Sequence record: NC_049851.1
Strand: one strand, 5' to 3'
Length of the DNA stretch: 64,000 nt
This document shows, piece after piece, positions 1,930 to 29,185 of this stretch; position 1 is the first letter of the stretch, and each line of letters starts with the position of its first letter. Position numbers and translations under genes: made by a program. The notes below the pieces were generated by a model. It searched no databases and was not told where the DNA came from. It saw nothing but the letters and a program-made list of their open reading frames with translations.

Positions 1930-2032
1930 TGCCCCTTGCTTGTTGAATCGATGAGTGAATCATACACGATAAATAAGCCCGTCAACAATACCCGACCGAT
2001 ACTCGGGGTTATTATGCATGCGGGCCCGCGTG

Positions 2033-2041
2033 TGCTATGAT
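2033..2041 (+). promoter_or_regulatory. extended -10 promoter, divergent partner of the 1980 element
   Basis: TG-C-TATGAT upstream of the plus-strand operon 2072-3093. Confidence 0.55.
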
Positions 2042-2071
2042 TCGTACATCAACCAACTAAGCGAGTCAGAC

Positions 2072-2284
2072 ATGATCCTAGCAATGGTCAACGCAGCACG
2101 TCGCCGGGGTGGTAACGCTCAGGCAGTAGTGGCGAACGCGTATGAACGCGCATGCGAGTGGGTTGCGGATTGTGGCGGCGACGTGCGGGAATGGTTCGTG
2201 TATGAGGTGCGATGCGTGACCGATTTCGACGGCGCGGATCGTGAGACGTGCGATTGGCTCGCGCAACAATTACAGGAAATGTGA
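2072..2284 (+). CDS. hypothetical protein
   Basis: start moved to ATG 2072 after the promoter. Confidence 0.6.
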   Translation: MILAMVNAARRRGGNAQAVVANAYERACEWVADCGGDVREWFVYEVRCVTDFDGADRETCDWLAQQLQEM

Positions 2285-2398
2285 ATGATCGTCGTTAAGG
2301 TAGTGTTGTGTGCATGGGTCGGATACTGCGCCTATGCAATGGCCCGCGATATCTGGCGCGAGTATGCGCCGCGTGCGCGCACGCGCAAGGGGGCTTAA
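2285..2398 (+). CDS. small membrane protein (37 aa)
   Basis: read by hand: MIVVKVVLCAWVGYCAYAMARDIWREY...; AGGA RBS. Confidence 0.5.
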   Translation: MIVVKVVLCAWVGYCAYAMARDIWREYAPRARTRKGA

Positions 2399-2400
2399 CC

Positions 2401-2688
2401 ATGGCTCGTTCACTGGTAGGAACAGCAGCAAAGGGCAAGGGCGAACCTGCACGCCCGGCCGCGCCGACCGAATGGGAAGTGTTCTGTAAAGTCTGGCGCG
2501 ATCACTTCGGGGATACGAGCCCGACGCGTGCTGCGTTCGACCTGTGGCAATTGTCGCGTAAGCGTGCACTCGGGCAGGCGGCGCGACTCCATAGCCAATG
2601 GGCGGGAATGTGCCCGGCAGGATCGGGCCGCGCCTACAATCATTCGCTGTATGCGAGCGCGATTACCGACCTATACAAGGATGAATAA
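2401..2688 (+). CDS. hypothetical protein
   Basis: AAGGGGG RBS; operon packing. Confidence 0.65.
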   Translation: MARSLVGTAAKGKGEPARPAAPTEWEVFCKVWRDHFGDTSPTRAAFDLWQLSRKRALGQAARLHSQWAGMCPAGSGRAYNHSLYASAITDLYKDE

Positions 2689-2689
2689 C

Positions 2690-2866
2690 ATGCAGGTTAA
2701 GATACAGCCGACGACCGGGGGCCGCGTTCGTGTCGTCATCGCGAGCGGCTATCGTGCGGGCGCATTCGTGTGTCACGCCTCATCCGATTTCCCTGTCGTC
2801 TGGCCCGACGTAGACGCGGCTAAGACATGGTGCGCGATGACAGGCTATGAGGTAGTGGCACCATGA
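2690..2866 (+). CDS. hypothetical protein
   Basis: AAGGA RBS; ATGA overlap with the next ORF. Confidence 0.6.
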   Translation: MQVKIQPTTGGRVRVVIASGYRAGAFVCHASSDFPVVWPDVDAAKTWCAMTGYEVVAP

Positions 2867-3093
2867 CCGCGCGCACGTCTAAGCCGGTCTCCGTACGCGT
2901 GAAGCGGAATATCTGGGGCAATTGGAACGCGTATGAAGGCGTGCACCATGTACGCGAGCTAGGCGCGTCCGAATTCATGGCCCGTGAATGGTTGCACGAA
3001 CGCATGTCACGCGGGGATTGCGTGCTGTCTCCATCGTCGGACGTGAACCAGACGGAGTTAGACGAGCACAGGCGGCGCGTGTACGGATCATGA
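2863..3093 (+). CDS. hypothetical protein, similar to the N-terminus of 7667..8368
   Basis: GAGG RBS; ends at the terminator. Confidence 0.7.
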   Translation: MTARTSKPVSVRVKRNIWGNWNAYEGVHHVRELGASEFMAREWLHERMSRGDCVLSPSSDVNQTELDEHRRRVYGS

Positions 3094-3094
3094 G

Positions 3095-3116
3095 AAAAGG
3101 GGCCTAGGCCCCCTTT
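3095..3116. terminator. bidirectional intrinsic terminator
   Basis: AAAAGGGGCC-TA-GGCCCCCTTT between convergent genes. Confidence 0.75.
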
Positions 3117-3123
3117 CGTTCGT

Positions 3124-3537: not shown

Positions 3538-3624
3538 GGTGTTCCCCTTCGGGTTTGTTGAACGTGCACAAATGATAAAGGCCCCGATTGGGGCCTGTCA
3601 ACAATACCTTAGTGAAATGCTGGG

Positions 3625-3801
3625 TTATACGCGTTCGACGTATTGCCCCGAACGATAGGCGCGCGTTTCCTCTACGCGCCCATAGAATTCCAGATCGAAC
3701 GTTACGATTCCGTTCGCGTCATAGACGAACAGGACAAGGGCCCGCGCCCCGTCGATTTTCAGCGTATCGCCCGCTTGCACGTCCCGCGCTCTTACTTGCA
3801 T
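3625..3801 (-). CDS. hypothetical protein (58 aa, MQVRARDVQAGDTLKIDG...)
   Basis: read by hand; GAGGT RBS; TAA lies inside the 27-bp box. Confidence 0.65.
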   Translation of the reverse strand: MQVRARDVQAGDTLKIDGARALVLFVYDANGIVTFDLEFYGRVEETRAYRSGQYVERV

Positions 3802-4492: not shown

Positions 4493-4583
4493 TTCGTTCC
4501 CCGTCTGGGTTTGTTGAGCATGTACAAATGATAGCGGCCCCGATTGGGGCCGTCAACAATAACCCTTCACTTTATGGGGTTAT

Positions 4584-4787
4584 TCAGTAGGCGAGCAGAT
4601 CGCGCAGCGCATCGCGGTTTTTCGACATATGGTCGATGATCGCGAGCCGTTCGCGTAACCCGATATTGCGGAACGCGGGGCACCCGTCGAGCAGATCGCC
4701 CAGCAAACCGTCCCGATATTCGAGTGCCTTTTCCATGGTGTCGAATTGCTTGCCGCGCGTTACATAGACCCTCTTTTCTTCGATCAC
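4584..4787 (-). CDS. hypothetical protein
   Basis: AGGGGG RBS; stop overlaps the box. Confidence 0.7.
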   Translation of the reverse strand: MIEEKRVYVTRGKQFDTMEKALEYRDGLLGDLLDGCPAFRNIGLRERLAIIDHMSKNRDALRDLLAY

Positions 4788-5245: not shown

Positions 5246-5336
5246 GGTGCTGACTCCGTGCGCTGCGTTGAAAGTGATTCCATTATGGGGCGTGTTCGAC
5301 GCCCCGTCAACAGTACCCGACTAAAACGCGGGGTCT

Positions 5337-5501
5337 TTAAACCGCTGCCAGTTCATCCGCCCGGAAGTGACCGCGCACGCCGTAGCGATTTTCGCAGACA
5401 ATGAACTCACCCTCGAAGCCGATAACGCGGATCGTTGCGGCATTGACGCCCGTAAGGATGCGAGCGCGAACAGCTTGATTGAGTGCGAATGCGTGTTTCA
5501 T
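5337..5501 (-). CDS. hypothetical protein
   Basis: start moved to ATG 5501; TAA abuts the box. Confidence 0.65.
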   Translation of the reverse strand: MKHAFALNQAVRARILTGVNAATIRVIGFEGEFIVCENRYGVRGHFRADELAAV

Positions 5502-5576
5502 TTCGTTGTCCTGATTGATTGAGGTATGGGCTAGATTATGACGGGGCTTTCTCACCACGTCAACACCTATTTTCGA

Positions 5577-5855
5577 TTATTCTGCGTCCGTGTCCGCTTG
5601 TTTGACGAGGTAGCCCCAGCCTTTGTAATCCGGATCGGTTTCCGCACGATAGAACCCTTCCGCCGCCAGTGCCGACAGGTGCCCGGCCCATTGGTTCGCG
5701 TTCATCACGTCGCGCACGCTGTCATACGCTGCATGCAGTTCGATTGCGCCGCTCTTATGTTCGCGTGCTTCGATCATGAGTGCCAGCTTTGCGCAGAGTG
5801 CCAGATTGCCCGCGCGCTTTGCGATCTTGAGGCAGTGACGAGCGACTTTCGACAT
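5577..5855 (-). CDS. hypothetical protein
   Basis: start moved to ATG 5855 (CCGGAG RBS). Confidence 0.7.
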   Translation of the reverse strand: MSKVARHCLKIAKRAGNLALCAKLALMIEAREHKSGAIELHAAYDSVRDVMNANQWAGHLSALAAEGFYRAETDPDYKGWGYLVKQADTDAE

Positions 5856-6002
5856 GATGAACTCCGGTTTCTGGTTAGCGGTTCGTCGTGAACCAATGAA
5901 CGTATAGTAACACGCGAAAAGGGGCGTGCGCAATAACCCTATTTTCTGTAGGGTTATTGCGTCACGCCCCCCCTGAAACGGAGTCGTTATTCTGTGCCCG
6001 TC

Positions 6003-7078: not shown

Positions 7079-7330
7079 TTACTGCGTGTCGCTGTCGTCG
7101 TGTTCCGTGCCGTCGTCGCCCGCGCTGTCGTCGTCTGCAAACTGCCCGAGCACGTAATCATTCGCGAGCCCGATAATCCGGTCTTCCGCGTCTTCCGCAT
7201 CCATGCCGTGCAGTTCGTCGGCCGTGAACAGGATAACCGCGTAGCCCCGCGCCTTCAGACCGCGCAGCATCGCGATTTCTTCGGGCGTCAGGTCGTTTTG
7301 TGCTGCGTTCGTGTTCGTTGCGTCGGTCAT
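7079..7330 (-). CDS. acidic hypothetical protein
   Basis: start moved to ATG 7330 (ACGGAG RBS). Confidence 0.7.
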   Translation of the reverse strand: MTDATNTNAAQNDLTPEEIAMLRGLKARGYAVILFTADELHGMDAEDAEDRIIGLANDYVLGQFADDDSAGDDGTEHDDSDTQ

Positions 7331-7382
7331 GATGTACTCCGTTATGTAATCGATGGGGGCCGCGCTAGGCCCCTTGGTTTGG

Positions 7383-7580
7383 TTACTGTGCCGCTTTCTT
7401 CGCCTTGTCTGCGGCCCGTGCACGTCGGCAATGTTCGCATTGCTCGCCCGGCTGTGCCGCATCAAAGAACGGGCCCGACACAAGGCCGTTAAGCGTGTCG
7501 CGCTTTTGATAGCCGCGCGCATAGCAAAGCGTCATCGTTGCGCCATTCTTGAATTTAGCTACCACGTGAAGCTTTGCCAT
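7383..7580 (-). CDS. hypothetical protein with a CxxC pair
   Basis: AGGGG RBS after promoter 7638. Confidence 0.65.
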   Translation of the reverse strand: MAKLHVVAKFKNGATMTLCYARGYQKRDTLNGLVSGPFFDAAQPGEQCEHCRRARAADKAKKAAQ

Positions 7581-7666
7581 TTTGCGCCCCTGCGTTTCGT
7601 TGATCGATGGCTCTATTCTGGGGCCCGCGTTTCGGGCTGTCAACAATACCCGACTAAAACGCGGGG

Positions 7667-8368
7667 TTATTTGGTCGGATGCCGGTCGATACAGGCTTGC
7701 GCTGCCTCGTCTACCGTGTCGAACAGGCCCGAATCCTCAACCCAGAATCGCGCGCTGTAACGATAGTTGTCGCCGATAGGCTGAATCGCGAATCCCAGTT
7801 CACTGCACTGCGTAATCAGGCTCTGTGTATGCTGTTCGGCATCGCGCTTGCGTTGCACGTCGAAATGCGCGCGCATCAGTTCCCGAACGAGCCCGGTTCG
7901 CGCGCTGTCCATCGTCTGAAACGGGCCCGCGATGTTACGCTGTGCCGTTACGTCGAACACGTAGAAAGGCGCGTCGCGGCCGTCGCCCTGTAGCGTGCCA
8001 TCGTCGGCCGTGCCGTCGATTACCAGACAGTTACCGTCGGCCGTGTAGCCGGTGCGCGCTTCGTCCAGTTCGCGAGCCTTTGCGCTCGCGCGCTTAACGG
8101 CCGCCCATGCGGTCGGGGCGGGGGCTGCTGCATCTTCCGTCTTCGCGACCGGTTCGGCATCCACGCGCGGCTGATGGTAGCGGCTGACAGCTTCCGCAAC
8201 CTGTGCGGCGTCGATTTCCGACGCGGCGGACACCACGTGACCCTGTTCGATCAATTCGGCCATATAGCAGCAGACAGCCATTTCGCTATCGCCTTGCGGA
8301 TGCGCGGTGCGGCCGATGTAGACGATCCAGTTACCGTGCATGTTCTTGCGTGCGCGAATCAGGGACAT
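7667..8368 (-). CDS. multi-module hypothetical protein (233 aa)
   Basis: GGAG RBS after promoter 8427; TAA inside the box. Confidence 0.8.
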   Translation of the reverse strand: MSLIRARKNMHGNWIVYIGRTAHPQGDSEMAVCCYMAELIEQGHVVSAASEIDAAQVAEAVSRYHQPRVDAEPVAKTEDAAAPAPTAWAAVKRASAKARELDEARTGYTADGNCLVIDGTADDGTLQGDGRDAPFYVFDVTAQRNIAGPFQTMDSARTGLVRELMRAHFDVQRKRDAEQHTQSLITQCSELGFAIQPIGDNYRYSARFWVEDSGLFDTVDEAAQACIDRHPTK

Positions 8369-8458
8369 GATGCTAACTCCGTGTGTTGTGTGTCGATGTG
8401 TGTATTCTGGGGCCTATAGTCGGCCCCGTCAACTATTCCCGAGTAAATCACTCAGGTA

Positions 8459-8674
8459 TCACATAGTGCGTTGCCGTGTGTAGAGCACGCGGTTAATGTC
8501 GTCGCGGATGCACACACGATAGGGGCCGTCGCGTTCCACTATGTAGGCCCGCCACTTGTGAATTACGATCGTTCGCGCGCATCCATAGGTGATCATCTTG
8601 TGTTCACCTTCGTCCGCGATCATTTGCGCGTCCTCTTCCGCCAGCTTGGCGGGGCCGTCGTCGTTCGTGCTCAC
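8459..8674 (-). CDS. hypothetical protein
   Basis: GTG start with GGGGG RBS; stop overlaps the box. Confidence 0.5.
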   Translation of the reverse strand: MSTNDDGPAKLAEEDAQMIADEGEHKMITYGCARTIVIHKWRAYIVERDGPYRVCIRDDINRVLYTRQRTM

Positions 8675-9873: not shown

Positions 9874-10435
9874 CGTCCCTACCCCTTACCCTTCGTTGAC
9901 GGTAACGCTATCCTAATCCAGACAATCCGCCACGTCAACAATAACCCCTCGTTTCAGTCGGGTTTATTTCTGCACAGAAACCCCACACAATCCGGGGTTA
10001 TTCCCGTGCCCGGCTAACCACTCGCAGCACGCTACTTTCTTCATTATAAACACGCGCTACAGCCCCTTAAACGGGCCGCCTGTAGTTTCCCCTACCCATC
10101 AGTCAATCACGCGCACCGGGCCGCCTGAGCGCGTTCTCTGCGTCTATGCGTTCGTCAGGAATGCAGCGCAATGCGGGGCCCGGGCCCGGGCCATTGATCG
10201 GGAATCCTGACGATCCGGGCTCGCGCGATTAGATGATTCGCACTACCGACGAATGCGGTACTTGACGCGCTGCCCCGTCTGTGCCGTGTGCGATGCCCCG
10301 CCCGGGCCCCGCCCCATCCGGTTTTCGTTAGCACAACTAATCGCGCTCGTCAACTATACCCCCTCCCCCCATCCGGTTTTTAGCACCCCCTCCCCCTATC
10401 TGTGGTAGTAAGGTATCCTACCAAAACCCCGTTTT

Positions 10436-10552
10436 CGGGCCCGGGGTTTTTCGTGAAATAAACAGGGGGTCTAATTCGCGTGCGTAAGGTATCCCCCGGA
10501 TGCTGGGTGCGGGCCCGGGGTTTTTCGTGAAATAAACAGGGGGTCTAATTCG
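10436..10552. repeat. two identical 43-bp direct repeats in a non-coding gap
   Basis: CGGGCCCGGGGTTTTTCGTGAAATAAACAGGGGGTCTAATTCG at 10436-10478 and 10510-10552. Confidence 0.9.
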
Positions 10553-10637
10553 TGTGCGGTGCGCGTGTGCCGCGTATAAACGGAAAAGGGGAACCCCTAT
10601 CATGCAGGTTCCCCTATCTGGCGTGCGTGCTGTGTGT

Positions 10638-10934
10638 CTAGTCCGCTGCGCCTGCGTCTACGTGGTGCGATTCCACAAGCGTATGCCCGTGTTCTACTGC
10701 ATAGGCGCGCACCCGCTCGATTACGTGTTCAACGATCCAGCGTTCGGGGCCCTGTATCGTGAGCGTAACCCGGTTAGCCCATTGCTTAGAACGGACGTGC
10801 GCACCACAGGCCCGGGCTTCTGCGTGTACGTGATTCACGAACGCGCGGCGCGCATCCGCGAACGCGTTATCGTTGTCGGATACGCGATAGTGCATGGTCG
10901 CGCTATATGTTGCGGTGATGTTAATCACGATCAT
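10638..10934 (-). CDS. hypothetical protein
   Basis: ATG 10934 with GGGGG RBS overlapping the previous gene. Confidence 0.6.
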   Translation of the reverse strand: MIVINITATYSATMHYRVSDNDNAFADARRAFVNHVHAEARACGAHVRSKQWANRVTLTIQGPERWIVEHVIERVRAYAVEHGHTLVESHHVDAGAAD

Positions 10935-11387: not shown

Positions 11388-11470
11388 GGTCTTGTCCAAT
11401 GGGTTAGTTGATGTGGTGATTATGGGGGCTGGCTGCGCCCCCGTCAACTATACCCGTTTAGAGTGTGGGG

Positions 11471-12475: not shown

Positions 12476-12707
12476 GGTCTTTCCCCTTCCGGGTTCGTTG
12501 AGCGTGGACAAATAGTAACAGCCCCTTAGAGGGGCCGTCAACAATAACCGACTAAATTAGTCGGTCTTTATCCTGTGCTAACCGTCTTCTGCACGATAGC
12601 CCCGATCCAGTCGGCCGGAATCACGCTGACGGTGCGTGTCACGTCCCCCGCTTCGTCTTCCGATCCGGTCTGTACCGTATGCGTCAGGGGCCGGGGCCCC
12701 CATCCCC

Positions 12708-13217: not shown

Positions 13218-13364
13218 TTTCAAATCTCCGTTTGGTGAGAGTGTGCTACGTGGTTAAGTGGGTGTTGCGTGATTCGTTAAGACAGATTGTAGGGGACTAA
13301 ATTTTGTACGTCAACTAATCCCCTTCAATTTGTGGGGTCTTTTTCGCAGACCCCGGCGCGTTCG

Positions 13365-13622: not shown

Positions 13623-13738
13623 TCCCTAGTTGTGTTGCGTTAATCGATGAAGCAGATTGTAGGGCAATCATTTCCGCCCGTCAACAATACCCCTACAATT
13701 TGCGGGGTCTTTACGGCAGACCCCGGGGCCGGTGCGCG

Positions 13739-16567: not shown

Positions 16568-16653
16568 CGTTGCACCTGTTTGGTTAGTCGATGGACAAAT
16601 AATAACGGGCCCCGAAAGGCCCGTCAACAATACCCGACTAAATCGCGGGGTCT

Positions 16654-18144: not shown

Positions 18145-18239
18145 GATGTGCCCCGTTAGGCGTTGTCGATGTGTGAAGTATGCCCGGGCCCGCGAGGCGC
18201 GTCAACAGTACCTGAGTATTTTAGTCGGGTATTGCTGCC

Positions 18240-18263
18240 AAAGAAAAGGGGCCTAGGCCCCTT
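18240..18263 (-). terminator. intrinsic terminator
   Basis: identical to 15734-15757. Confidence 0.75.
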
Positions 18264-18360
18264 CCCTGTCACTTCCTGCCCGTACCGCTTGCGCGGGGCG
18301 GTCTCACGCCATACACTACCATTGTAGCACAGGCCGCCGCCCCTGTCAAGCCCCGGCCCC

Positions 18361-19382: not shown

Positions 19383-19416
19383 AAAAGAAAAGGGGCCCCA
19401 TATGGGGCCCCTTTTT
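19383..19416. terminator. bidirectional intrinsic terminator
   Basis: AAAAGGGGCCCCA-TA-TGGGGCCCCTTTT. Confidence 0.8.
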
Positions 19417-19731: not shown

Positions 19732-19872
19732 TTACGCGAGTTTGCCGCGTGCGTCGTGCTTCTCACGGCGTGCCTTGCGTCGCGCCTGTTCACGCGTGCG
19801 CACCGCGTCGGCATCGCGTGCCGGGGCTTTGCGCGAGATACGTTCGAAATGTGCGTTGCCTTGCATTTGCAT
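19732..19872 (-). CDS. small basic protein (46 aa)
   Basis: read by hand; AAGGGA RBS after promoter 19936. Confidence 0.55.
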   Translation of the reverse strand: MQMQGNAHFERISRKAPARDADAVRTREQARRKARREKHDARGKLA

Positions 19873-19966
19873 GATGGTTCCCTTAGAGAAGGTTTGTTAA
19901 GTAAGTGTGTGTATCATACCGGGTTTAATTTCGTCCGTCAATTAAACCCGTACTAAAATTAGGCTT

Positions 19967-20107
19967 TTATGCTGCCTGCATGCCGCGCACTTGCCGGATT
20001 GCATCGCGCACTTGCTCACGTGCGAACGGGAACCGGCGCAGGTTGCGCAGACCGTAATTGATGCCGATAAATTCGATTGCCGTTTCGATATCGCGGAAGG
20101 TCTTCAT
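19967..20107 (-). CDS. hypothetical protein (46 aa)
   Basis: GGAG RBS; TAA inside the box. Confidence 0.6.
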   Translation of the reverse strand: MKTFRDIETAIEFIGINYGLRNLRRFPFAREQVRDAIRQVRGMQAA

Positions 20108-20120
20108 AGTGAACTCCAAA

Positions 20121-20564
20121 TTAAAAGAAAATGACGGTGCGCGCTTCCTCGTCAAAATCGACGCACATATTCCAATCACGGCCGCGCGACGTGACCATAT
20201 CGCATGCGTCAGTCAGCCGCGCGCCCAGACCCCCGGCTTTCAGTTCCGCGCGATCCCAGAAACCCGTGCCGTGACCCTGACTCGTCAAATACAGGTCATG
20301 CCCGAAAGACGCGAAGGGCCATTCGTGCGCACGCGCGCCCCCGAAGTCTTGCGCGCAGCGGTCGCCATAACCGGGGCGCGTAACCGCATCGATGCAATCC
20401 GCATGATACGCGAGCAGGAACGCACGAACGCCCTTTTCCACGTGTGCGCGCCCTTCCGGAGTCGCTTCGTAGTCGCTCGATTCGTCGGGGCTGTCGGCCC
20501 AGATAGCCGCGATGATGTAATGCCGAACGATGATATCGATTTGCGCGTCGCTGAAGTGTTGCAT
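20121..20564 (-). CDS. hypothetical phage/MGE protein (GHDLYLT-x3-HGTGFWDR motif)
   Basis: GAGG RBS after promoter 20630. Confidence 0.8.
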   Translation of the reverse strand: MQHFSDAQIDIIVRHYIIAAIWADSPDESSDYEATPEGRAHVEKGVRAFLLAYHADCIDAVTRPGYGDRCAQDFGGARAHEWPFASFGHDLYLTSQGHGTGFWDRAELKAGGLGARLTDACDMVTSRGRDWNMCVDFDEEARTVIFF

Positions 20565-20658
20565 GGTTGCCTCTAGGCGGTTAGTGCTGCGTTGAAAGTG
20601 ATGCTATTGTATGCGGCCCGTTCTAGAGCCGTCAACAATAACCCACTAATTCGAGGGG

Positions 20659-20940
20659 TTATTCTTCGACCCACAAGCTAGGATCGCACGACGTTTCAAT
20701 CCGGAAGTGCGACGCATCGCGATAACGGCGCACAAACAGGCGGCCGTGCTGCGCGTAGGTCATGCCTTCAGTCAGCCATGAAACATGGTGCAAATCGCCC
20801 GGCATCGGGGATTTGAGCGGCCCTGCGTGCGTGACACGAACGGGCGTGAATTCGTCAGGGAACAGCCGCGCATCGTAGCGCGTGCGCCGATAGTAGAGGG
20901 TCTTACCATCCACGTAATCCTGAAAGCATGCGGGTTTCAT
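20659..20940 (-). CDS. hypothetical protein
   Basis: AAGGGG RBS; TAA inside the box. Confidence 0.65.
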   Translation of the reverse strand: MKPACFQDYVDGKTLYYRRTRYDARLFPDEFTPVRVTHAGPLKSPMPGDLHHVSWLTEGMTYAQHGRLFVRRYRDASHFRIETSCDPSLWVEE

Positions 20941-20950
20941 GGTCGGCCCC

Positions 20951-21100
20951 TTACTCGGCATCGTACAGTGCGCACGCGTCGGCATAGCTAACGCCTTCGC
21001 ATTCCATGATCGTTTCGATCATGCGTTCGCGCTCGTCGGCTGCTGCCTCGTCGCGCATGTCGTCCATACCGTTCCGCCCCATCATTCCTACTTGTGCCAT
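20951..21100 (-). CDS. small acidic protein (49 aa)
   Basis: AAGGGG RBS after promoter 21161. Confidence 0.6.
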   Translation of the reverse strand: MAQVGMMGRNGMDDMRDEAAADERERMIETIMECEGVSYADACALYDAE

Positions 21101-21189
21101 TTCGTTCCCCTTCGGGTTCGTTGAATCGATGGACAAATAGTAACAGCCCCTTAGAGGGGCCGTCAACAATAACCACAAATAATTTGTGG

Positions 21190-21438
21190 TTATTCGGTGC
21201 GGAACAGGTGCGCGGGCGCGTCGTGCTCGTACCAGTAACGGGCATCGCGTAGCGTGTCATGACTGCCGACCGCGCGGCCGTCGATGCTGACGAGCCATCG
21301 ATTACGCGTAAGCGTCACCATACGCGCATGGGGCGGCCCGTCCGGGCTGTAGTTATCGCGTACCTGTACCAGTGCGCCGGACGGCGTGCAGGCCGCATAC
21401 AGCCCGGCCTCTACACGTTTCAGGGGCGGCCGGTTCAT
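21190..21438 (-). CDS. hypothetical protein
   Basis: ATGA overlap; TAA inside the box. Confidence 0.6.
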   Translation of the reverse strand: MNRPPLKRVEAGLYAACTPSGALVQVRDNYSPDGPPHARMVTLTRNRWLVSIDGRAVGSHDTLRDARYWYEHDAPAHLFRTE

Positions 21439-21929
21439 TCCGGTTTCCACGTCGAATAGGCGGCGGTGCGCGCAACGAATTGCGCGATAGCCGCGTCGAT
21501 CCGGGCGCACAGCTTCGCGTGGTGCGTTTCGTTGAGGGTCTGCCGACGCTTGCCCCCGGCTATCATGCGCACCCCAGCATGCACCACATACACGGCACCG
21601 GCCGGGCTTTCGACACGCCAGCTAGGCACGTTTCCGACGGTTGCCGTCTGTTCCACTTTCCAGCCCGCAACGTCGGGCCGGGCGGCGGCCGTAGCCGGGT
21701 CTGCGGCCCGCGCGCTCGCGATGGCCGGGGCCGTGCCCTTGTTCACGCGTGCCGACAGGTGCGCGACGTATGCGCGGAACGCATCGCCAATCGTGAACCC
21801 TGCGGGCAGTTCCGGAATCTCGCGCAGCAACGAATCGAACCCCCGCGCCCCTTTCTCGTAATCGAACCCGAGCACGGCCGCGAGCGCATCGCGGGCCGTC
21901 GGCGTCATTTGGTCATAAAGCTTTTTCAT
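21435..21929 (-). CDS. hypothetical protein
   Basis: AAGGGA RBS. Confidence 0.7.
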   Translation of the reverse strand: MKKLYDQMTPTARDALAAVLGFDYEKGARGFDSLLREIPELPAGFTIGDAFRAYVAHLSARVNKGTAPAIASARAADPATAAARPDVAGWKVEQTATVGNVPSWRVESPAGAVYVVHAGVRMIAGGKRRQTLNETHHAKLCARIDAAIAQFVARTAAYSTWKPE

Positions 21930-21942
21930 GGTGTCAAATCCC

Positions 21943-22635
21943 TTAACGGATCATGCGATGTTGGACGGTCACGAATGCTTGCCGGATCGCCCCGGCTTCG
22001 GTTTCCCACTCGTTAGCGGGCATCGGAAAACACGGATGCGACGCGAGCCACAGACCGGACGGCATGCACACGATATCGAACCCGAACGCGGCTACCACTT
22101 CCGCCTGAGACATGGTGTTAAGATCGCGTTGCATCACGCCCCCCTTGGCTTTGCGCGGTGCCCGGCCTGCGAGCATATACACGGTTTCGCGGTACTTGGC
22201 GCGGGCCTTTTTCAGTTCGTTCAGTGCGAACGATTCGGACAAAAGCGGCTCGCCTTCGTCTGCGTTCACTGCCGACAGGATAAGCGCGCCTGCACGGTGT
22301 TCAAGCCTTACGCGAACGCCCGCGCGTTCCACCTGTTCCACGTAGCCGCACGTCAGCGCGTACAGCGTAAGCGAGCCGTCCGCGTTTTTAAGCAATACGT
22401 CGGGGCGCACGCGTGCAACGCGTTGTTTGCCATGACGGCGCGCGAGCCACACGCGATAATGCCCCTCGTCGGTGCGGCCGTCGATATAGCGACGCGCGGC
22501 GTCGAGCGTCATAAACTCCCCATGCGTGACGCCTACAACAGTTCGCGCGTCGCCGTGCATGACGACAAAACCCTCGCGCGTGCTGCCGGTCAAAACGTCG
22601 TCAACGATAAAGAAACAGTTATGGATTTCGATCAT
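21943..22635 (-). CDS. hypothetical protein (230 aa)
   Basis: AAGGGG RBS after promoter 22704. Confidence 0.75.
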   Translation of the reverse strand: MIEIHNCFFIVDDVLTGSTREGFVVMHGDARTVVGVTHGEFMTLDAARRYIDGRTDEGHYRVWLARRHGKQRVARVRPDVLLKNADGSLTLYALTCGYVEQVERAGVRVRLEHRAGALILSAVNADEGEPLLSESFALNELKKARAKYRETVYMLAGRAPRKAKGGVMQRDLNTMSQAEVVAAFGFDIVCMPSGLWLASHPCFPMPANEWETEAGAIRQAFVTVQHRMIR

Positions 22636-22732
22636 GGTCAGCCCCTTTAGGCCGGTCTTTACTGCGTTGAAAGTGATTCTATTCTATGGGGCCTGCTGCC
22701 CCGTGTCAACAATAACCCCAGACTTTACTGGG

Positions 22733-23089
22733 TTATTCGTTGTCCATCATCCCGAGCCGGGCCCGGATCATTGACAGGCGTTCCGATACGGGCACGGCAC
22801 GGCCGCCGCCCAGACGAACCCATCCCGCGCCAGACGGGCACGCGTCAATGTCATGCACCCCGGAATAAGCGGCGCAAATGTCGGCCGCACTGTTAGCCTG
22901 TAGCAGCGTATAACCGGCCGTGCGCGCGTGCTGCGCAGCATCCCGGCCTGACTCCCACACGCGAGCATGCGCCCGGCCCGTCTTCTGTTCACCCTCCCCT
23001 ACAAACTGCGCGGGGCCCTGCGCGACGACACGCAGACGATAGCGCGTCGTGCCTTCGTGTTTCTGACGCATCACATACACTTGTTGCAT
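22733..23089 (-). CDS. hypothetical protein
   Basis: after promoter 23148; TAA inside the box. Confidence 0.7.
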   Translation of the reverse strand: MQQVYVMRQKHEGTTRYRLRVVAQGPAQFVGEGEQKTGRAHARVWESGRDAAQHARTAGYTLLQANSAADICAAYSGVHDIDACPSGAGWVRLGGGRAVPVSERLSMIRARLGMMDNE

Positions 23090-23186
23090 ACCCTTAAAAC
23101 TCCCGTTCGTGAATCGATGAGTGCAGTATGTGCGCGTGTGCCCGTACCGTCAACAGTACCAGACTAATTAACTCAGGTATTAGGGC

Positions 23187-23215
23187 AAAAGAAAAGGGCC
23201 CCTAGGGGCCCTTTT
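23187..23215. terminator. bidirectional intrinsic terminator
   Basis: AAAAGGGCCCC-TA-GGGGCCCTTTT. Confidence 0.8.
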
Positions 23216-23231
23216 GCGAGTGCGCGACGGA

Positions 23232-23639
23232 TCAACGATAGAGGTATTCCGTCCCCTCAATATCGATGGTCGAATAATCGACGCTCAGATTTTTGGCGGT
23301 CGCGTCCCAATCGATGACGAGATAGGACGGGATTTCGCGCGGCATGTCCCCGATATCGGACACCAATTGTTCACAATACTCCGTGAAGTGGCTGTCACGA
23401 ATCAGGCAGCCCGGATACCAATTACCCTCATATTGATGGTCGCCGCCTTCCCCGTTCAGTTCGGTCAGGATTTTTTCAAGCTGCTCCAGTTCGACCGCTT
23501 CGTCCGGGTTTTCGTCCGCCCAATCTGCGGCCCGGTCGTCGTCGCTGTCGTGCGTGTCGCGCTCGTCTTTCAGTTCGTCGTAACGGTCGCAAATGTCGGA
23601 CACGTTGATGATATCGGCGCTCAGGTCAAGATCGGACAT
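23232..23639 (-). CDS. ArdA-like antirestriction protein (acidic, DNA-mimic type)
   Basis: very Asp/Glu-rich; C-terminal IPSYLVIDWDATAKNLSVDY resembles the ArdA C-terminal Y(I)D(W/Y)EAxARDL motif. Confidence 0.6.
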   Translation of the reverse strand: MSDLDLSADIINVSDICDRYDELKDERDTHDSDDDRAADWADENPDEAVELEQLEKILTELNGEGGDHQYEGNWYPGCLIRDSHFTEYCEQLVSDIGDMPREIPSYLVIDWDATAKNLSVDYSTIDIEGTEYLYR

Positions 23640-23760
23640 GGTGTTTACTCTGCTGTTTGGTTAAGGTGTTACCAGTATAGATGGGAGAATTCCCTGCGTC
23701 AAGAATAACCCCGCATAGTGTAGGGATTATTCTTGACGGGGCCCGAAAGGGCCCGGGCCG

Positions 23761-24150
23761 TTATTCGGCGTCGTCTTCCTCGTCGGCCGTTTCGGTCGCT
23801 TGTTCCACGTCGGGCACTTCCGACGTGCGCCCGAGCGATTCAGCCAGTTCGCGGAACCATACGGCGTCGCACCCGTCCATATCCGTATATTCGGCCGCCA
23901 GTTCCGCAAACGTGCCTTCACGCCCAGCGTAAGGCGACGTGTAGAACGATTCCAGCGCGCCATCGCGCAAGATCGCCGCTTGAAAATCGGCGTTCGTCAG
24001 GAATACGAGCCCGCTATGCGTGTTGAACGCCGCTTGTACCGCTTCGGTGCTGAAGTCTTCGGGCAGGCCGCCATCGTTCCATGCTTGTAGGATCGCGATG
24101 AGTTCATCACGTTCGCGACGGCCCATGTTTGCCATGTTGGTAAGCGACAT
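23761..24150 (-). CDS. acidic hypothetical protein
   Basis: AAGGA RBS after promoter 24207. Confidence 0.75.
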   Translation of the reverse strand: MSLTNMANMGRRERDELIAILQAWNDGGLPEDFSTEAVQAAFNTHSGLVFLTNADFQAAILRDGALESFYTSPYAGREGTFAELAAEYTDMDGCDAVWFRELAESLGRTSEVPDVEQATETADEEDDAE

Positions 24151-24237
24151 TCGTTTGATTCCTTGTTCGTTCAGAGAGATTACATTGTGCCGGGTAGTGT
24201 TCTCTCTGTCAACAATACCCGAGTGCGGCGCGGGGTC

Positions 24238-24612
24238 TTACTTCGTCAACGCGCCCGACAGGCTTTTGACGCATGCGCCGTAAGCGGGCTCGCGTGCATC
24301 GTCGGGGCTCGCGCCCTTGAATGCGGCGCTGCTGTAAATCAGGGCCGCATTACCCTTCATCAGATCGACAAGCGGACGCGCGACGCCCGCAAACGTGCGT
24401 TCGATATCGGCCTGAGTTTCCGCGAGCGTCACCCCGCTATCACGTGCGCGAACCGACAAAACCGCAACGTCAGCAACGCCGTTACACGTCTGCGAAATGT
24501 TCGCCTTTTCTTCCGCCGTGAGCGGCGCAGCCTGCGCCGGAACCCCAGCCCCGCACGATGCGGCAGTCGCGAGCGCAGCGAACGCGACTGCGGAAACGGT
24601 ACGTTTGAACAT
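24238..24612 (-). CDS. putative exported protein
   Basis: signal-peptide-like MFKRTVSAVAFAALATAASCGAGVPAQA; two further Cys. Confidence 0.7.
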   Translation of the reverse strand: MFKRTVSAVAFAALATAASCGAGVPAQAAPLTAEEKANISQTCNGVADVAVLSVRARDSGVTLAETQADIERTFAGVARPLVDLMKGNAALIYSSAAFKGASPDDAREPAYGACVKSLSGALTK

Positions 24613-24693
24613 GCTTGATTCTCCGGTTATGCGTCTGTTGAAAGTGAGTCTATTGTATGCGGGCCCGTGTAGGCCCGTCAACAATAAACCCCT

Positions 24694-25050
24694 TTACCCT
24701 AGGGTCTTCGCGATCCGACGCGCCCAGCGTCGAGCATAGCCCGCGCGTCGGCATCCGTGCGGATGCGTCGGCCCCGTGCCCTGCCCCAGACAATACAGAT
24801 AGGCGCGAAGGGCTGCATTGATGCTTTCCGGGGTTGCGCCCAGTTCACGCGCAAGATTTTTGCGCCTCAGTCTGAGCAACGCCATAAGGCTGTCTGCCTC
24901 ATACGTGTAACGTTCGTGTTTCAGGCCCGCATGCGCCATGATGCACGAATCGATTGAGACACGGGCGCGCGGTTGCATAGCCGCCGCCCAGCCCGGAACC
25001 GGGGCCTTTCGTTGTCGCCAATATTCGGCGTGTTCGCCTGTCACGATCAT
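24694..25050 (-). CDS. basic hypothetical protein
   Basis: ATGA overlap; runs into the box. Confidence 0.6.
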   Translation of the reverse strand: MIVTGEHAEYWRQRKAPVPGWAAAMQPRARVSIDSCIMAHAGLKHERYTYEADSLMALLRLRRKNLARELGATPESINAALRAYLYCLGQGTGPTHPHGCRRAGYARRWARRIAKTLG

Positions 25051-25343: not shown

Positions 25344-25430
25344 TTCGTTCCCCTTCCGGGTTCGTTGAGCGTGAAACCAGTATAGACGGGCGCGCGGCGC
25401 ACGTCAACAATAACCCCGTGCTCTATGGGG

Positions 25431-25853
25431 TTAAATCAAAATCATTTCCGTGTAACCCAGCGTCCGGGCAATTGCCAGCAGCGCATCATTACCCGCGCCC
25501 TGTTCGCACGACTCAAACGCGATTGGTGCGCCCGCGTCGTCGCGTATATCGATCCCTGCCGACACTAGGGCCCGGTCGAACGCGAGCCCGAACGATTCAC
25601 GCCCCGCGCTCGTCTTCGCCACGCCGTAACCTGACGTGGTAGCGGCCCCGCAACGAACCCACAGCGACGCATAGAGGTTCGTTGCGGACGTGCTGCGCGA
25701 TGCCCAGTAACGCAATTCGCACACGTGTTCAAGCTTACCCGTTACCGGGTTAAGGGCAACGAGGGAAACGGTGCGGATGCGTTCCTTCGTCCCGTCGTGC
25801 TGCTGCGCGTTATCCTGTTCACCCTTAAACGTTACTTGCATACGTTGCCTCAT
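25431..25853 (-). CDS. hypothetical phage protein
   Basis: ATGA overlap; TAA inside the box. Confidence 0.7.
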   Translation of the reverse strand: MRQRMQVTFKGEQDNAQQHDGTKERIRTVSLVALNPVTGKLEHVCELRYWASRSTSATNLYASLWVRCGAATTSGYGVAKTSAGRESFGLAFDRALVSAGIDIRDDAGAPIAFESCEQGAGNDALLAIARTLGYTEMILI

Positions 25854-26353: not shown

Positions 26354-26451
26354 TTGGTGCCCCTTTAGGCGTCGTGATTGGATGACTGAATTATGCGCGG
26401 GCCCGTCTGGCGTGTCAACAATAACCCCAAAATTTTTATGGTTATTCAGGC

Positions 26452-26476
26452 AAAGAAAAAGCCCCGGCTGGGGCTT
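26452..26476 (-). terminator. intrinsic terminator
   Basis: AGCCCC-AGCC-GGGGCT followed by TTTTCTTT on the minus strand. Confidence 0.7.
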
Positions 26477-26627: not shown

Positions 26628-27301
26628 GATCCGCGCGTGTCGAGCACTTCCGCCGCTTCCGTAATCGTAAGGTTCGGCACGCCGTCCACCATCCACGTTT
26701 CGACCGTCTGCCCGGCAATCCGGCGCAGGTAGACGGAAACCGGGACATTACGCAACCGGCCATGTCGCGCGGCCCCGAACGCTGCGAGTTCGTCCGATTT
26801 TGCGGCAAACCGAGCGACAATGGATTCTGCGAAGTCAACCAGTTCACGGGCTGCCGCAAGCGGGATAGCCTTGTGCGGTTGCGGGGCCGCGACTCGCGCA
26901 ACCTCGTTTTCTGCGTCGCGTTGCTGGGTGAACGTGCCCCGTCCGTCAACGTACCAGTTACACACGATCCAATCACGGGCCCGCGTATGGATCGCGCAGC
27001 ACGTGACAGGCACGCCCCCGATATCTGCGGTTTCCGCATGATCGTCTTTCGACGTGCGGGCGATCTCGCGCGCTTCGTTCGCGAGTTTCGACAGTTCGGC
27101 CGAAATTTGATCGATGGTCATTACTTGTCCGTTCAACATGGCTTCGAATTCCATTTCATTTTCGAGAAAATACAGTTCGGGGGTGCCCGCGATAAGATGC
27201 CGGGCCGCCCGCGCTTGCTCGGCACGCCATTCCGGATTATCGGGGAATGCGCGCCGGGCCCGGGCTAGTTCGATCCGCAAGTGTAGCGCGAGCGGTGACA
27301 T
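26624..27301 (-). CDS. hypothetical protein (225 aa)
   Basis: TAATG overlap. Confidence 0.75.
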   Translation of the reverse strand: MSPLALHLRIELARARRAFPDNPEWRAEQARAARHLIAGTPELYFLENEMEFEAMLNGQVMTIDQISAELSKLANEAREIARTSKDDHAETADIGGVPVTCCAIHTRARDWIVCNWYVDGRGTFTQQRDAENEVARVAAPQPHKAIPLAAARELVDFAESIVARFAAKSDELAAFGAARHGRLRNVPVSVYLRRIAGQTVETWMVDGVPNLTITEAAEVLDTRGS

Positions 27302-27786
27302 TATGCGACGAGCCGCTTAACGGGTTCAACGCTGCGCGGGTGATAAACCCAGCGCAGTTCAGCCAGCAAGGGCGCGTATTCTTCCGGGGTTGCCAGCTTC
27401 AAATCGCGGCCCAGACTGCGCGACACTTCCCCATGCTGCCCCGTGTGCATGTAGGACATCACGTTACCCGGGTTGCAGTCTTTCGCGCTGTTACAGAAAA
27501 ACGCGATTACGTAACCCTCGCGAAACTTGCGGAACACGACACGCAACGCGGGCGGCGCAAACTTCGCGGCCCCGTAGCGCTGCGCGTCTTCGGACAGGGC
27601 GCGCACGCCCGAGGGGTCATGTGCATCCCGCGAGCCGTGAACGTCGACCAGATCGCCGCTGCGCTTATCGAATTGAAACGTGATCGGAACGCGGGGGCCA
27701 AACCCGGGCCATTTGCGCGCGAACGCTTCAACGTCTGCGGTCGTGCACTGCACGGTAAAGAATGCCCCATTATCATATGCTCGCAT
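27301..27786 (-). CDS. two-module hypothetical protein (VVFRKF...YMHTGQH motif)
   Basis: GAGG RBS after promoter 27851. Confidence 0.75.
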   Translation of the reverse strand: MRAYDNGAFFTVQCTTADVEAFARKWPGFGPRVPITFQFDKRSGDLVDVHGSRDAHDPSGVRALSEDAQRYGAAKFAPPALRVVFRKFREGYVIAFFCNSAKDCNPGNVMSYMHTGQHGEVSRSLGRDLKLATPEEYAPLLAELRWVYHPRSVEPVKRLVA

Positions 27787-27882
27787 GGTTGCCTCTAGGC
27801 GGTTGTGCTGCTGTTGAAAGTGAAACCAGTATAGGACGGGGCCGCCGCCCCGTCAACAATACCAGACTACCGCGAGGGGTCT

Positions 27883-28254
27883 TTATTCCGTGCCCCGCAA
27901 GCGACGTACAATTTCCGCGTGCGACAGGCCCGACATAAGACGGTCAATTTCCGCTTGCTCGTCCGCCTGCCGTCGCTCGTCTTCTGCTACCTGCCTAGCG
28001 AGTTCTGCGCGCCACTCTTTCAGGGCCCGCGCGCCCTTTTCCGTGCTGCGCGGATCAACCGACAGATAGAGCGTGACTTCGCGCCCCTCCCGGTCAACGA
28101 AAACGGGCGTGCCGCTATTTTTCACCACTACCGTGAAATGCGACTGAACCAGACGGTTTACGGTGTCGGCATCGATAGCCCCGCCAAACGATCCGCCCAC
28201 AACCTTCCGCGTGTTGTCGCTGTAGAGGCGCGTGTGATAGCTGATATTGCGCAT
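27883..28254 (-). CDS. hypothetical protein
   Basis: after promoter 28311; TAA abuts the box. Confidence 0.75.
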   Translation of the reverse strand: MRNISYHTRLYSDNTRKVVGGSFGGAIDADTVNRLVQSHFTVVVKNSGTPVFVDREGREVTLYLSVDPRSTEKGARALKEWRAELARQVAEDERRQADEQAEIDRLMSGLSHAEIVRRLRGTE

Positions 28255-28331
28255 GTCAAACCCTGTTGGTGCGTTGAAAGTGATACCAGTATAGGGGCGG
28301 CGGGCCGCCCCGTCAACAGTATCCGATTAAT

Positions 28332-28676
28332 TTAGTCGGGTTTGTCGTCCTGCACTTGTGCGCCCGGCCGCGCCAGCTTTTCCAGCTTGGCAAGCAACGA
28401 AACAGCGTCCTTAACGTAGCAGGTGCACGCGGGCCGCTTCGCCTCATACTCTGCTACTGCCTGAGCATGCGCCGCCCGGTCTCCGTCCTTAACACGGCCG
28501 CCCGGCCCCCGCTTAGGGCCGCCCCCGAAAATCTGTTGAGCGTGTCTGTTGTGAACGGCAACCGCGCAGCTATAGGCGTGCATCGGATGCCGGATGAGGG
28601 GCCCGAAAATCGCGAGCACGTCCCGCGCTAAATCGGCTTGCCCGTCGTCGTATGCTTGATTGTATGCGTCCTGCAT
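28332..28676 (-). CDS. hypothetical protein
   Basis: GAGGGG RBS. Confidence 0.7.
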   Translation of the reverse strand: MQDAYNQAYDDGQADLARDVLAIFGPLIRHPMHAYSCAVAVHNRHAQQIFGGGPKRGPGGRVKDGDRAAHAQAVAEYEAKRPACTCYVKDAVSLLAKLEKLARPGAQVQDDKPD

Positions 28677-28687
28677 GGTGTTTCCCC

Positions 28688-28912
28688 TCAGTGATCGCGT
28701 TTAACGCTAGTGACGTTGCCGTTATGCTTGCGCACTTCCCAATTGATGCCGTAGTGGCTGAACCCGGTAACACGGTGCGCGCCCGCGTATCGGCCTTCCG
28801 CCACGTCGAACGAATGATCTTTCGTGATCGTGCCGTAACGCCTGCATTCGGCCGCTACCTCGTCAAGACTGCCTGCCTTGAATGCCGTGATGAGTTCTGC
28901 TTTGGTCAACAT
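28688..28912 (-). CDS. hypothetical protein
   Basis: first ORF after promoter 28968. Confidence 0.7.
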   Translation of the reverse strand: MLTKAELITAFKAGSLDEVAAECRRYGTITKDHSFDVAEGRYAGAHRVTGFSHYGINWEVRKHNGNVTSVKRDH

Positions 28913-28999
28913 GGTTTGTCGTTCGGTTCGTTAGAGTGACGCCATTGTATAGGGCAAGTGGGCGCGCGTGCAATACCCCTAAAAAGTTTTTGGTTTTTG

Positions 29000-29027
29000 T
29001 TGACGCGGCCGGGGAAGCGTGTAGAAT
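29000..29027 (+). promoter_or_regulatory. sigma70 promoter (rightward 1)
   Basis: TTGACG-N16-TAGAAT; shares a box with leftward promoter 28968. Confidence 0.7.
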
Positions 29028-29128
29028 GGGAACCGGTGAGCAACACGGGCAAACGCAGCCGCGACGCGGTGGGGAACCCGGAGCCCGGCCCCTGCCCGGT
29101 CGCGCAAACGTTTGCGCCGGGTGTCCGG

Positions 29129-29185
29129 AGTACCCGACAAAAACGCTAGGGTACTATTGACGCGACCGCGAATAGGGCGCACAAT
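29129..29185 (+). promoter_or_regulatory. 27-bp box plus sigma70 promoter (rightward 2)
   Basis: AGTACCC-N13-GGGTACT, then TTGACG-N17-CACAAT. Confidence 0.75.

Follow-up and report, generated by a model that had tools for sequence, protein, structure and literature searches.

The first 29 kb of the genome of Burkholderia phage BcepSauron probably constitute an early, accessory (“hyperplastic”) region partitioned by many copies of one composite terminator/promoter element, of the kind described in T4-like phages as promoter–stem-loop (PeSL) units. The stretch of DNA analysed here, referred to as the window, comprises 64,000 nucleotides of record NC_049851.1. It is 100% identical to nucleotides 1–64000 of the BcepSauron record MK552141.1, so window and genome coordinates are the same. 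The element combines a 27-bp palindrome, a near-consensus sigma70-type promoter and a short leader, and its copies head about 33 units of small genes. In PeSLs, a sigma70-like promoter is closely preceded by a stem-loop and followed by a Shine–Dalgarno (SD) sequence and an ATG, and this arrangement is repeated among the ORFans of hyperplastic regions (PMC2839356, PMC4122927). The original prediction, made from the sequence of the window alone, compared the array with PeSLs, and the analogy is apt, as the layout is the same (PMC2839356, PMC4122927). It had also called the array differently built, a description that falls away because the main plan is the published PeSL layout.

Architecture and Confinement of the Element

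The element was defined by a regular-expression scan, repeat finding and two alignments. On the coding strand, it reads AATAACC-N13-GGTTATT (the 27-bp palindrome), G, TTGACR, a spacer, nAnnnT and a leader. The spacer between TTGACR and nAnnnT is 17 nt long in most copies, with a range of 15–18 nt. After nAnnnT come 4 nt, a conserved TCA that is likely the transcription start, a TCAAC box, an SD-like motif and the ATG. The alignment is gapless through the palindrome and the −35 hexamer, and in each of the 32 copies a single nucleotide separates the palindrome from the −35. In other words, the length of the palindrome and its register against the −35 are fixed, whereas the spacer (15–18 nt) and the leader (59–97 nt) vary. 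The distance from TTGAC to ATG is 59–78 nt, with one exception of 97 nt; the start codon is always ATG, and an SD-like motif accompanies it in 27 of 31 first genes. The alignments thereby bear out the predicted order of palindrome, G, TTGACR, N17, promoter, leader and ribosome binding site.

A sequence-only covariance model, built from the 32 copies, was scanned across the whole 262.6-kb genome. It recovers 32 full copies, 30 on the minus strand (1944–28343) and two on the plus strand (28971–29043 and 29131–29202). About eight further copies are partial or divergent. These include two weak divergent partners, each having its palindrome in common with a full copy (1986–2057, plus strand; 28935–28999, minus strand), promoter-only copies at 5529–5565, 29258–29300, 29377–29414 and 18349 (the last from the regular-expression scan), a degenerate copy at 10338–10381 and a promoterless palindrome at 9974–10003. 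Outside 1.9–29.4 kb, the whole-genome scan found nothing at E<0.01, the sole match being a promoter-only site at position 217976 (E=0.011). The palindrome core TAACC-N13-GGTTA is found eight times in the window, where 0.04 occurrences would be expected, and is absent from the remaining 200 kb. Additionally, positions 1–31 kb contain 40 sigma70-like sites, compared with about 13 expected. Scans of the window against Rfam and for tRNAs gave no match. A role of the palindrome as an UP-element was ruled out by eye, the stretch from −46 to −38 being T-rich/GGG and not A-rich.

The roughly 33 cassettes originally proposed are well matched by these 32 full and about eight partial or divergent copies in about 33 units, and the whole-genome motif scan that had been suggested finds the copies confined to 1.9–29.4 kb. 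The proposed span of 1980–29185 captured the array and missed its limits, since the genes of the first unit reach down to 1119 and promoter-only copies extend to about 29414. The array and its parts are given below, each copy being named by the position of its TTGAC.

1119–29414, mostly minus strand, with divergent plus-strand units at both ends: whole array, 65 small coding sequences (CDS), BcepSauron_005–069, in about 33 promoter-headed units
1944–2014, minus: element copy, TTGAC 1985, spacer 15 nt, 46.1 bits; palindrome 1987–2013 common to the divergent partner
1986–2057, plus: promoter-like divergent partner heading genes 009–012 (19.5 bits, E=2e-4)
3092–3118, both strands: bidirectional canonical terminator (AAAAGGGGCCTAGGCCCCCTTT) between the convergent plus-strand unit 009–012 and gene 013
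3557–3629, minus: element copy, TTGAC 3601, GC hairpin in spacer
4513–4585, minus: element copy, TTGAC 4556, spacer hairpin; gene 017 has its stop codon in the left palindrome arm
5266–5338, minus: element copy, TTGAC 5310
5529–5565, minus: promoter-only copy without palindrome, TTGACG-17-CATAAT, heading gene 020
5887–5959, minus: copy 5927, degenerate −35 (CGCACG)
7598–7672, minus: element copy, TTGAC 7643
8388–8459, minus: element copy, TTGAC 8432
9894–9966, minus: element copy, TTGAC 9938; second, promoterless palindrome just upstream at 9974–10003
10338–10381, minus: degenerate copy, TTGAC 10351, poor −10, no annotated gene downstream
11403–11476, minus: element copy, TTGAC 11447
12496–12570, minus: element copy, TTGAC 12541; a BcepSauron/BcepSaruman replacement ends at its TATTG|TTGAC junction
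13282–13343, minus: element copy, TTGAC 13314
13638–13713, minus: element copy, TTGAC 13684
14369–14442, minus: element copy, TTGAC 14413, without spacer hairpin; preceded by canonical terminator 14454–14469
15033–15107, minus: element copy, TTGAC 15078, one boundary of the gene 041 cassette absent from BcepSaruman
15656–15727, minus: element copy, TTGAC 15699, other boundary of the gene 041 cassette; canonical terminator upstream
16583–16656, minus: element copy, TTGAC 16627
17384–17445, minus: element copy, TTGAC 17416, strongest palindrome (−12.3 kcal/mol)
18162–18234, minus: element copy, TTGAC 18205; preceded by canonical terminator 18240–18261
18321–18354, minus: promoter-only copy with extended −10, TTGACA-17-TGcTACAAT
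19388–19415, minus: strong canonical terminator inside a four-gene unit, 12 pairs then a T run
19896–19969, minus: element copy, TTGAC 19941
20590–20664, minus: element copy, TTGAC 20635
21122–21195, minus: element copy, TTGAC 21166
22665–22738, minus: element copy, TTGAC 22709
23108–23182, minus: element copy, TTGAC 23153, canonical terminator upstream
23663–23728, minus: element copy, TTGAC 23702
24168–24240, minus: element copy, TTGAC 24212
24637–24708, minus: element copy, TTGAC 24681; gene 061 ends 15 nt inside the palindrome
25363–25433, minus: element copy, TTGAC 25407
26374–26447, minus: element copy, TTGAC 26418; canonical terminator 26459–26476 upstream
27813–27885, minus: element copy, TTGAC 27856
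28272–28343, minus: element copy, TTGAC 28316
28935–28999, minus: divergent weak copy, −35 CACGCG, heading genes 069–068; palindrome 28966–28992 common to the plus-strand copy
28971–29043, plus: element copy, TTGAC 29000, no annotated gene downstream
29131–29202, plus: element copy, TTGAC 29157
29258–29414, plus: two promoter-only copies without palindromes, TTGACA 29261 and TTGACG 29377

Phage Lineage and Host Polymerase

BcepSauron is a jumbo myovirus with a GC-rich (59%) genome of 262.6 kb, assigned to the genus Sarumanvirus in the taxonomy of its record. BcepSaruman is the one close relative that the phage collection contains. The terminase is most similar to that of phiRSL1 (59%), followed by those of Burkholderia phage BCSR5 (52%) and Achromobacter phage Motura (44%), and on this likeness BcepSauron is a member of the RSL1 lineage, not of the T4 lineage. 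RSL1 lacks a gene for RNA polymerase and shows full sensitivity to rifampicin (PMC5468394). In the BcepSauron record, neither an RNA polymerase nor an integrase is annotated; the only transcription-related annotation of this kind concerns sigma-like proteins, one of which has a sub-threshold Sigma70_r2 match. A nucleus-forming phage with its own virion RNA polymerase was ruled out, since a preprint on the related phage Matilda places the Matilda/BcepSauron group far from the nucleus-forming phiKZ-like phages (10.64898/2026.10.21.760668). We infer that the element promoters are usable early by the host RNA polymerase holoenzyme, without a phage protein. The expectation of sigma70-type promoters in front of small ORFan genes was correct.

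Genes of the Array

The array holds 65 annotated CDS (005–069), somewhat fewer than the 70 or so first estimated, with a median length of 95 aa and, as anticipated, one to five genes per unit. The genes are unrelated to one another, as had also been claimed: no two of the array proteins are paralogous at E<1e-3 in an all-against-all BLASTP comparison. A Pfam family (DUF7447) is assigned to one of the 30 largest, and none of these contains a recombinase, integrase or transposase domain. Several GenBank names have no Pfam support at E<0.01, namely replication factor (15761–16567), transposase (16654–17343), tail tape measure protein (21435–21929), glycosyltransferase (21943–22635) and serine/threonine kinase (23761–24150). 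The largest protein of the array, of 334 aa, has no homologue outside its own cluster among 5.8e9 proteins. Five of ten scanned array proteins match PHROGs of unknown function well and a sixth does so marginally (E=7e-4); gene 043, the “transposase” of GenBank, matches only PHROGs of unknown function. The only DNA-binding hint in the array is a sub-threshold Crp-like helix-turn-helix (HTH) in gene 061 (E=0.007). One array gene region resembles, at the DNA level, an ArdA-like gene of a Stenotrophomonas phage. GC content is flat across the region (0.58–0.60). This gene content fits an early, accessory, host-interaction region.

Palindromes and Spacer Hairpins

The palindrome has the shape of an A-tract, a GC clamp, a loop, a second GC clamp and a T-tract. 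Folded copy by copy, it is more stable than its shuffled versions, with a mean of −6.9 kcal/mol, a mean z of −2.6 and z below −1.5 in 23 of 31 copies. Sequence conservation extends over the outer 7 bp of each arm, and the inner 13 bp are variable. Two arm subtypes occur, together with many hybrids, and pair 17–46 is unpaired in 17 of 36 cells. The preceding gene runs into the left arm and has its stop codon there in 17 of 29 copies, which have no other terminator. As single sites, palindromes of the shape AATAACCC-N11-GGGTTATT are common in unrelated viral contigs, a wide spread that is expected from a generic bidirectional-terminator shape. In copy 5927 (palindrome 5929–5955), the 9-nt centre reads ACAGAAAAT, compared with the inverted ATTTTCTGT in BcepSaruman (about 5855–5883), while the arms are kept. 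Such an inverted centre is, to judge from the two sequences, the signature of a hairpin- or inverted-repeat-mediated flip.

Two neighbouring copies, 13314 and 13684 (13316–13380 and 13686–13750), lie within a 98-nt direct repeat (spacing 370 nt, 77% identity). An alternative hairpin is possible in each of them, through pairing of the left arm AAAGACCCC with a GGGGTCT upstream.

A further hairpin resides within the promoter. The spacer between −35 and −10 is itself a GC-rich hairpin in 17 of 31 copies, with energies of −9 to −16 kcal/mol. Its stems vary among copies (GGCCCC/GGGGCC, GGGGCG/CGCCCC, GGGGGC/GCCCCC and others), so it is pairing, not sequence, that is conserved. Since this hairpin lies outside the transcript of its own promoter, as RNA it would act on upstream read-through only. 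The canonical GGGGCC/GGCCCC terminators that had been described as occasional are found, with a T-run, directly upstream of the palindrome at five copies, and a few more occur elsewhere. None of these five copies has a spacer hairpin, compared with 17 of the 26 others (hypergeometric P=0.012), although the five terminator-bearing copies are one subfamily and the test is thus not independent. The spacer hairpin may close or stabilise the upstream transcript; if it does, the 3′ end of one unit overlaps the next promoter. The hairpins are more likely to attenuate transcription or insulate units than to stop transcription completely. To call the units self-contained was an overstatement, given a canonical terminator in only about five to eight units and few palindromes that follow the terminator rule.

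One short unit on the minus strand (18240–18354) consists of the near-consensus promoter TTGACA-17-TGcTACAAT and, about 75 nt later, the terminator at 18240–18261, without an open reading frame (ORF) of more than two codons. It is a candidate small RNA and has no Rfam match.

Indels and Replacements between BcepSauron and BcepSaruman

The breakpoint comparison rests on one genome pair, BcepSauron and BcepSaruman, which are separated by six indel or replacement events in the array region. In the first event, BcepSauron carries positions 15083–15688, with gene 041, a promoter core and the next palindrome, and BcepSaruman has one chimeric element in their place. The event has its two ends in register within the TTGACG cores of neighbouring elements, which share 16 nt. 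The second is a replacement at 12546–12670 (gene 036 of BcepSaruman), bounded by TATTG|TTGAC and, at its other end, by a terminator. In the third, gene 069 and its promoter core are replaced, and the ends coincide with the palindrome/−35 edge (28960) and with the ATG of gene 068.

Modules of the element are also shuffled between copies. For instance, in BcepSaruman, the orthologue of copy 27856 has a palindrome that belongs to copy 16627, a conversion between non-orthologous copies 11 kb apart. Copies 12541 and 21166 have a 45-nt identical block between unrelated flanks; their spacers are 100% identical and their palindromes different. Similarly, copies 12541 and 25407 have the leader in common and not the spacer, and copies 5310 and 16627 have the palindrome in common and nothing else. 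The identity of the two phages forms a mosaic in which blocks of 100% stand amid 3–12% divergence.

The identical blocks of this mosaic include 7200–8400, 19800–23600 and 29200–31000. They point to recent exchange between BcepSauron and BcepSaruman or with a shared relative.

Proposed Mechanism and Alternative Explanations

In the mechanism that best accounts for these observations, each copy would supply a near-consensus sigma70-type promoter (TTGACR, 17±1 nt, nAnnnT, start at TCA) for the host RNA polymerase, and a short leader with SD and ATG, evident in the sequence, precedes the first of one to five small genes. The 27-bp A-tract/GC/T-tract palindrome, directly upstream, would close the preceding unit. 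The second, stronger GC hairpin in the spacer of 17 of 31 copies would act on upstream read-through, so that the end of one unit overlaps the promoter of the next. The conserved joints (TATTG-TTGACGG and the −10) could offer short identical patches at which the general recombination of the phage makes crossovers; these would remove, add or swap whole expressed units and shuffle the modules of the element. In the comparison of the two genomes, element-to-element exchange is seen for one cassette and suggested for two replacements.

A role of the palindrome as terminator or insulator is favoured by its A-tract/GC-clamp/T-tract shape, by the frequency of this shape as single sites in unrelated viral contigs and by the stop codons within its left arm. 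Several other properties of the palindrome weigh against its role as a terminator. A simple stem/loop/T-run arrangement is present, in the sense direction, in about three of 32 palindromes, and the canonical form of an intrinsic terminator (GC-rich stem, 3–8 nt loop, U-rich tract) is not that of the palindrome: most copies have 3–6 GC pairs and a centre of 9–13 nt, and the tail TATTGTTG has five T in eight. Only 63% of palindrome cells pair: the outer seven positions reach 73%, the inner six 51%. Folding energies do not differ between the sense and antisense strands, RNAalifold returns no consensus fold for the element copies, and covariation is modest and confounded by the two arm subtypes and their hybrids; a conserved RNA motif is therefore not claimed. 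Each end of the array has a palindrome flanked by two divergent promoters, a position in which there is no transcript for a terminator to end. The length of the palindrome and its one-base gap to the −35 are constant, unlike the spacer and the leader, with zero indels across 32 copies. Such fixity is a need of a protein-binding site and not of a terminator, which is why an operator is kept as a live rival. Under this alternative, the palindrome would mainly be the site of a dimeric protein, of phage or host, on AATAACC/GGTTATT half-sites with centres 20 bp apart, beside the −35. The protein would switch all of about 35 promoters together, for example in early-gene shut-off, and its action would be compatible with the promoter and recombination parts of the mechanism. 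The conserved outer 7 bp of the arms next to a variable inner 13 bp (51% paired), the lack of strand bias and of consensus RNA structure, the sharing of the palindrome by the divergent promoter pairs and its occurrence nowhere else in the genome, not even as a terminator, agree with an operator. However, no candidate binding protein was found apart from the hint in gene 061 (Crp-like HTH, E=0.007), the two arm types are mixed in many copies (pair 17–46 is unpaired in 17 of 36 cells), unrelated viral contigs abound in palindromes of the same shape, 17 of 29 left arms also supply a stop codon, and the fixed geometry may simply be inherited from a common ancestor copy. An operator as the main function is thus considered unlikely. 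A broader version, in which a dimeric protein at fixed phase beside the roughly 35 promoters switches the early set and/or directs recombination, and the spacer hairpins are a new kind of terminator, appears quite improbable; were the protein-operator reading true, the array would be a protein-guided cassette library.

Objections of another kind concern the crossovers. Three of the six events involve no element: most of gene 022 was lost by internal deletion (event 4), an extra BcepSaruman gene was gained or lost via a crossover between similar 5′ gene ends (event 5), and gene 034 is present or absent between translationally coupled genes (event 6). Four of 11 event ends lie within 12 nt of a palindrome/−35 junction, with P=2.4e-4 under a uniform model and P=0.074 when breakpoints are confined to the non-coding 19.8% of the region; counted by events (three of six), the values are 0.004 and 0.22, respectively. 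The boundaries of the single-nucleotide polymorphism (SNP) mosaic show no relation to the elements either, as 76% of shifted partitions do as well in a piecewise likelihood test. These results favour the possibility that the elements are only regulatory, resembling one another because each combines a hairpin with a strong promoter of host type, and that genes are gained and lost by ordinary illegitimate or short-homology recombination anywhere in non-coding DNA. Against it stand the gene 041 event, with both ends in register in two elements and 16 nt shared, the palindrome conversion over 11 kb, the 45-nt block of copies 12541 and 21166 between unrelated flanks, and the demonstration of the same mechanism for PeSLs (PMC2839356), so that a purely regulatory role is possible but doubtful. 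A dedicated recombinase acting on the imperfect palindromes as attC-like sites, as in an integron-like site-specific cassette system, would agree with cassettes bounded by imperfect palindromes of fixed length, with the GenBank name of gene 043 and with the loop inversion of copy 5927, which shows that arms interact. It is nevertheless very improbable: the 30 largest proteins lack recombinase, integrase and transposase domains, gene 043 matches only unknown-function PHROGs, the junctions lie in the −35 core and not within the palindrome, and the cassettes carry their own promoters, which integron cassettes do not. From the genome comparison, we conclude that the elements probably serve as crossover points, and that they are not the sole route of change. 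Their recombination role is only partly supported, because three of six events occurred without an element and the SNP boundaries lie off the elements. The original prediction had made the repeat the homology unit for gaining, losing and swapping genes. This part of it stands for the exact exchange of gene 041, the two replacement ends and the module shuffling, and fails for the other three events and the SNP boundaries; the proposed breakpoint check itself gave three of six events at the element core, with P of 0.07–0.22 if only non-coding sites are considered.

Other Features in and beside the Array

Inside the array, 660 nt (9980–10640) are without an annotated gene and contain several hairpins. 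Within them, a 49-nt segment is repeated 74 nt apart with 98% identity (10436–10484 and 10510–10558).

At the right end of the array (29000–29440, plus strand), four promoters follow in a row (29000, 29157, 29261 and 29377), each followed by 60–110 nt of GC-rich DNA in which no gene is annotated. Repeats of the motif CATGGTGA(A)CGCGAC occur there, and the segments could be tiny ORFs without SD (22–27 aa) or short RNAs. Farther on, between the array end and a GIY-YIG endonuclease gene, a 14-bp palindromic unit (YCAAAARYTTTTGR, e.g., TCAAAAACTTTTGAC) recurs about 18 times within an AT-rich non-coding stretch (29700–30100), in many cases at intervals of some 20 nt. The arrangement resembles an iteron field, which might be a replication origin, a partition site or another protein-binding array. 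The adjoining annotated endonuclease (30204–31175) combines a GIY-YIG domain with at least three HTH modules (HTH_23, HTH_28 and Sigma70_r4_2) and is, by its predicted domains, of the homing-endonuclease type.

Occurrence in Other Sequences

The exact 20-base element pattern, searched in IMG/VR, JGI metagenomes and GTDB genomes, returned BcepSauron itself and single matches at chance level, with no second array. A distant blastn search over phage records found only BcepSauron and BcepSaruman, and the element model found nothing in the first 50 kb each of BCSR5 and RSL1. In the 1.4-kb metagenome contig Ga0075473_10070361 (GC about 0.42), three AATAACCC..GGGGTTAT palindromes lie between small ORFs at 200–1210. 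Two of them are placed directly or 11 nt upstream of promoters of the form TTGACT-N17-GACAAT or TAGAAT. These promoter-linked palindromes suggest that the same design exists in at least one unrelated uncultured phage fragment.

Implications

The array would extend the PeSL idea, in which accessory genes travel as exchangeable units with their own promoter and insulator, beyond T4-like phages to an unrelated, GC-rich lineage of jumbo phages, with an unusually regular block of 32 copies. It also flags about 65 genes as likely candidates for early host interaction or anti-defence functions. Moreover, its roughly 35 related promoters are a clean natural set for study in Burkholderia. The overlap of a unit’s 3′ end with the next promoter, with a stop codon in the palindrome and a hairpin in the spacer, would be a compact design.

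Comparison with Known Systems

The terminal-redundancy module of SPO1 and the pre-early/early region of T5 contain small early genes near the genome end, in short operons with a strong host-type promoter and a terminator. The BcepSauron array resembles these host-takeover regions in its many small genes of unknown function near a genome end and in having a promoter for each short operon. To our knowledge, the SPO1 and T5 regions have not been described as built from one repeated palindrome–promoter unit in fixed register.

The conserved inverted repeats of phiC31 and the stoperators of cluster A mycobacteriophages are repeats with an identified repressor, in temperate phages. The array shares with them a conserved short repeat at many intergenic sites of one region, beside promoters. 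It differs in that no candidate binding protein was found for its repeat and that no integrase is annotated in the record. With integron attC cassettes, the array has in common unrelated small genes separated by imperfect palindromes. Unlike the BcepSauron units, each of which has a promoter, integron cassettes are promoterless and need an adjacent IntI; in BcepSauron, the 30 largest array proteins lack a recombinase domain, and the palindrome itself contains none of the junctions.

The closest counterpart is the PeSL. In both systems, an inverted repeat lies immediately upstream of a sigma70-like −35/−10 pair about 17 nt apart, followed by SD and ATG, and many copies are clustered among small ORFans, all of them within 1.9–29.4 kb in BcepSauron. 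ORF192 of RB49 lies between two copies where phi1 has a single chimeric copy, just as gene 041 does in BcepSauron relative to BcepSaruman. Degraded “half” copies occur in both as well. The differences begin with the phage, which is not T4-like, having phiRSL1 as the nearest relative by terminase (59%) and a GC-rich genome (59%). PeSLs are scattered over several regions, whereas the BcepSauron copies form one contiguous 27-kb array. Its palindrome is fixed at 27 bp, exactly one base from the −35, and often holds the upstream stop codon; about half of the spacers contain a second GC hairpin, and the leader has a conserved TCAAC box. PeSL stem-loops were shown to terminate transcription, and recombination between neighbouring PeSLs was shown to give mini-circles (PMC2839356, PMC4122927). 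On the present evidence, it is neither a new class of system nor a new mechanism, and is best regarded as a PeSL-type composite terminator/promoter array in a new lineage.

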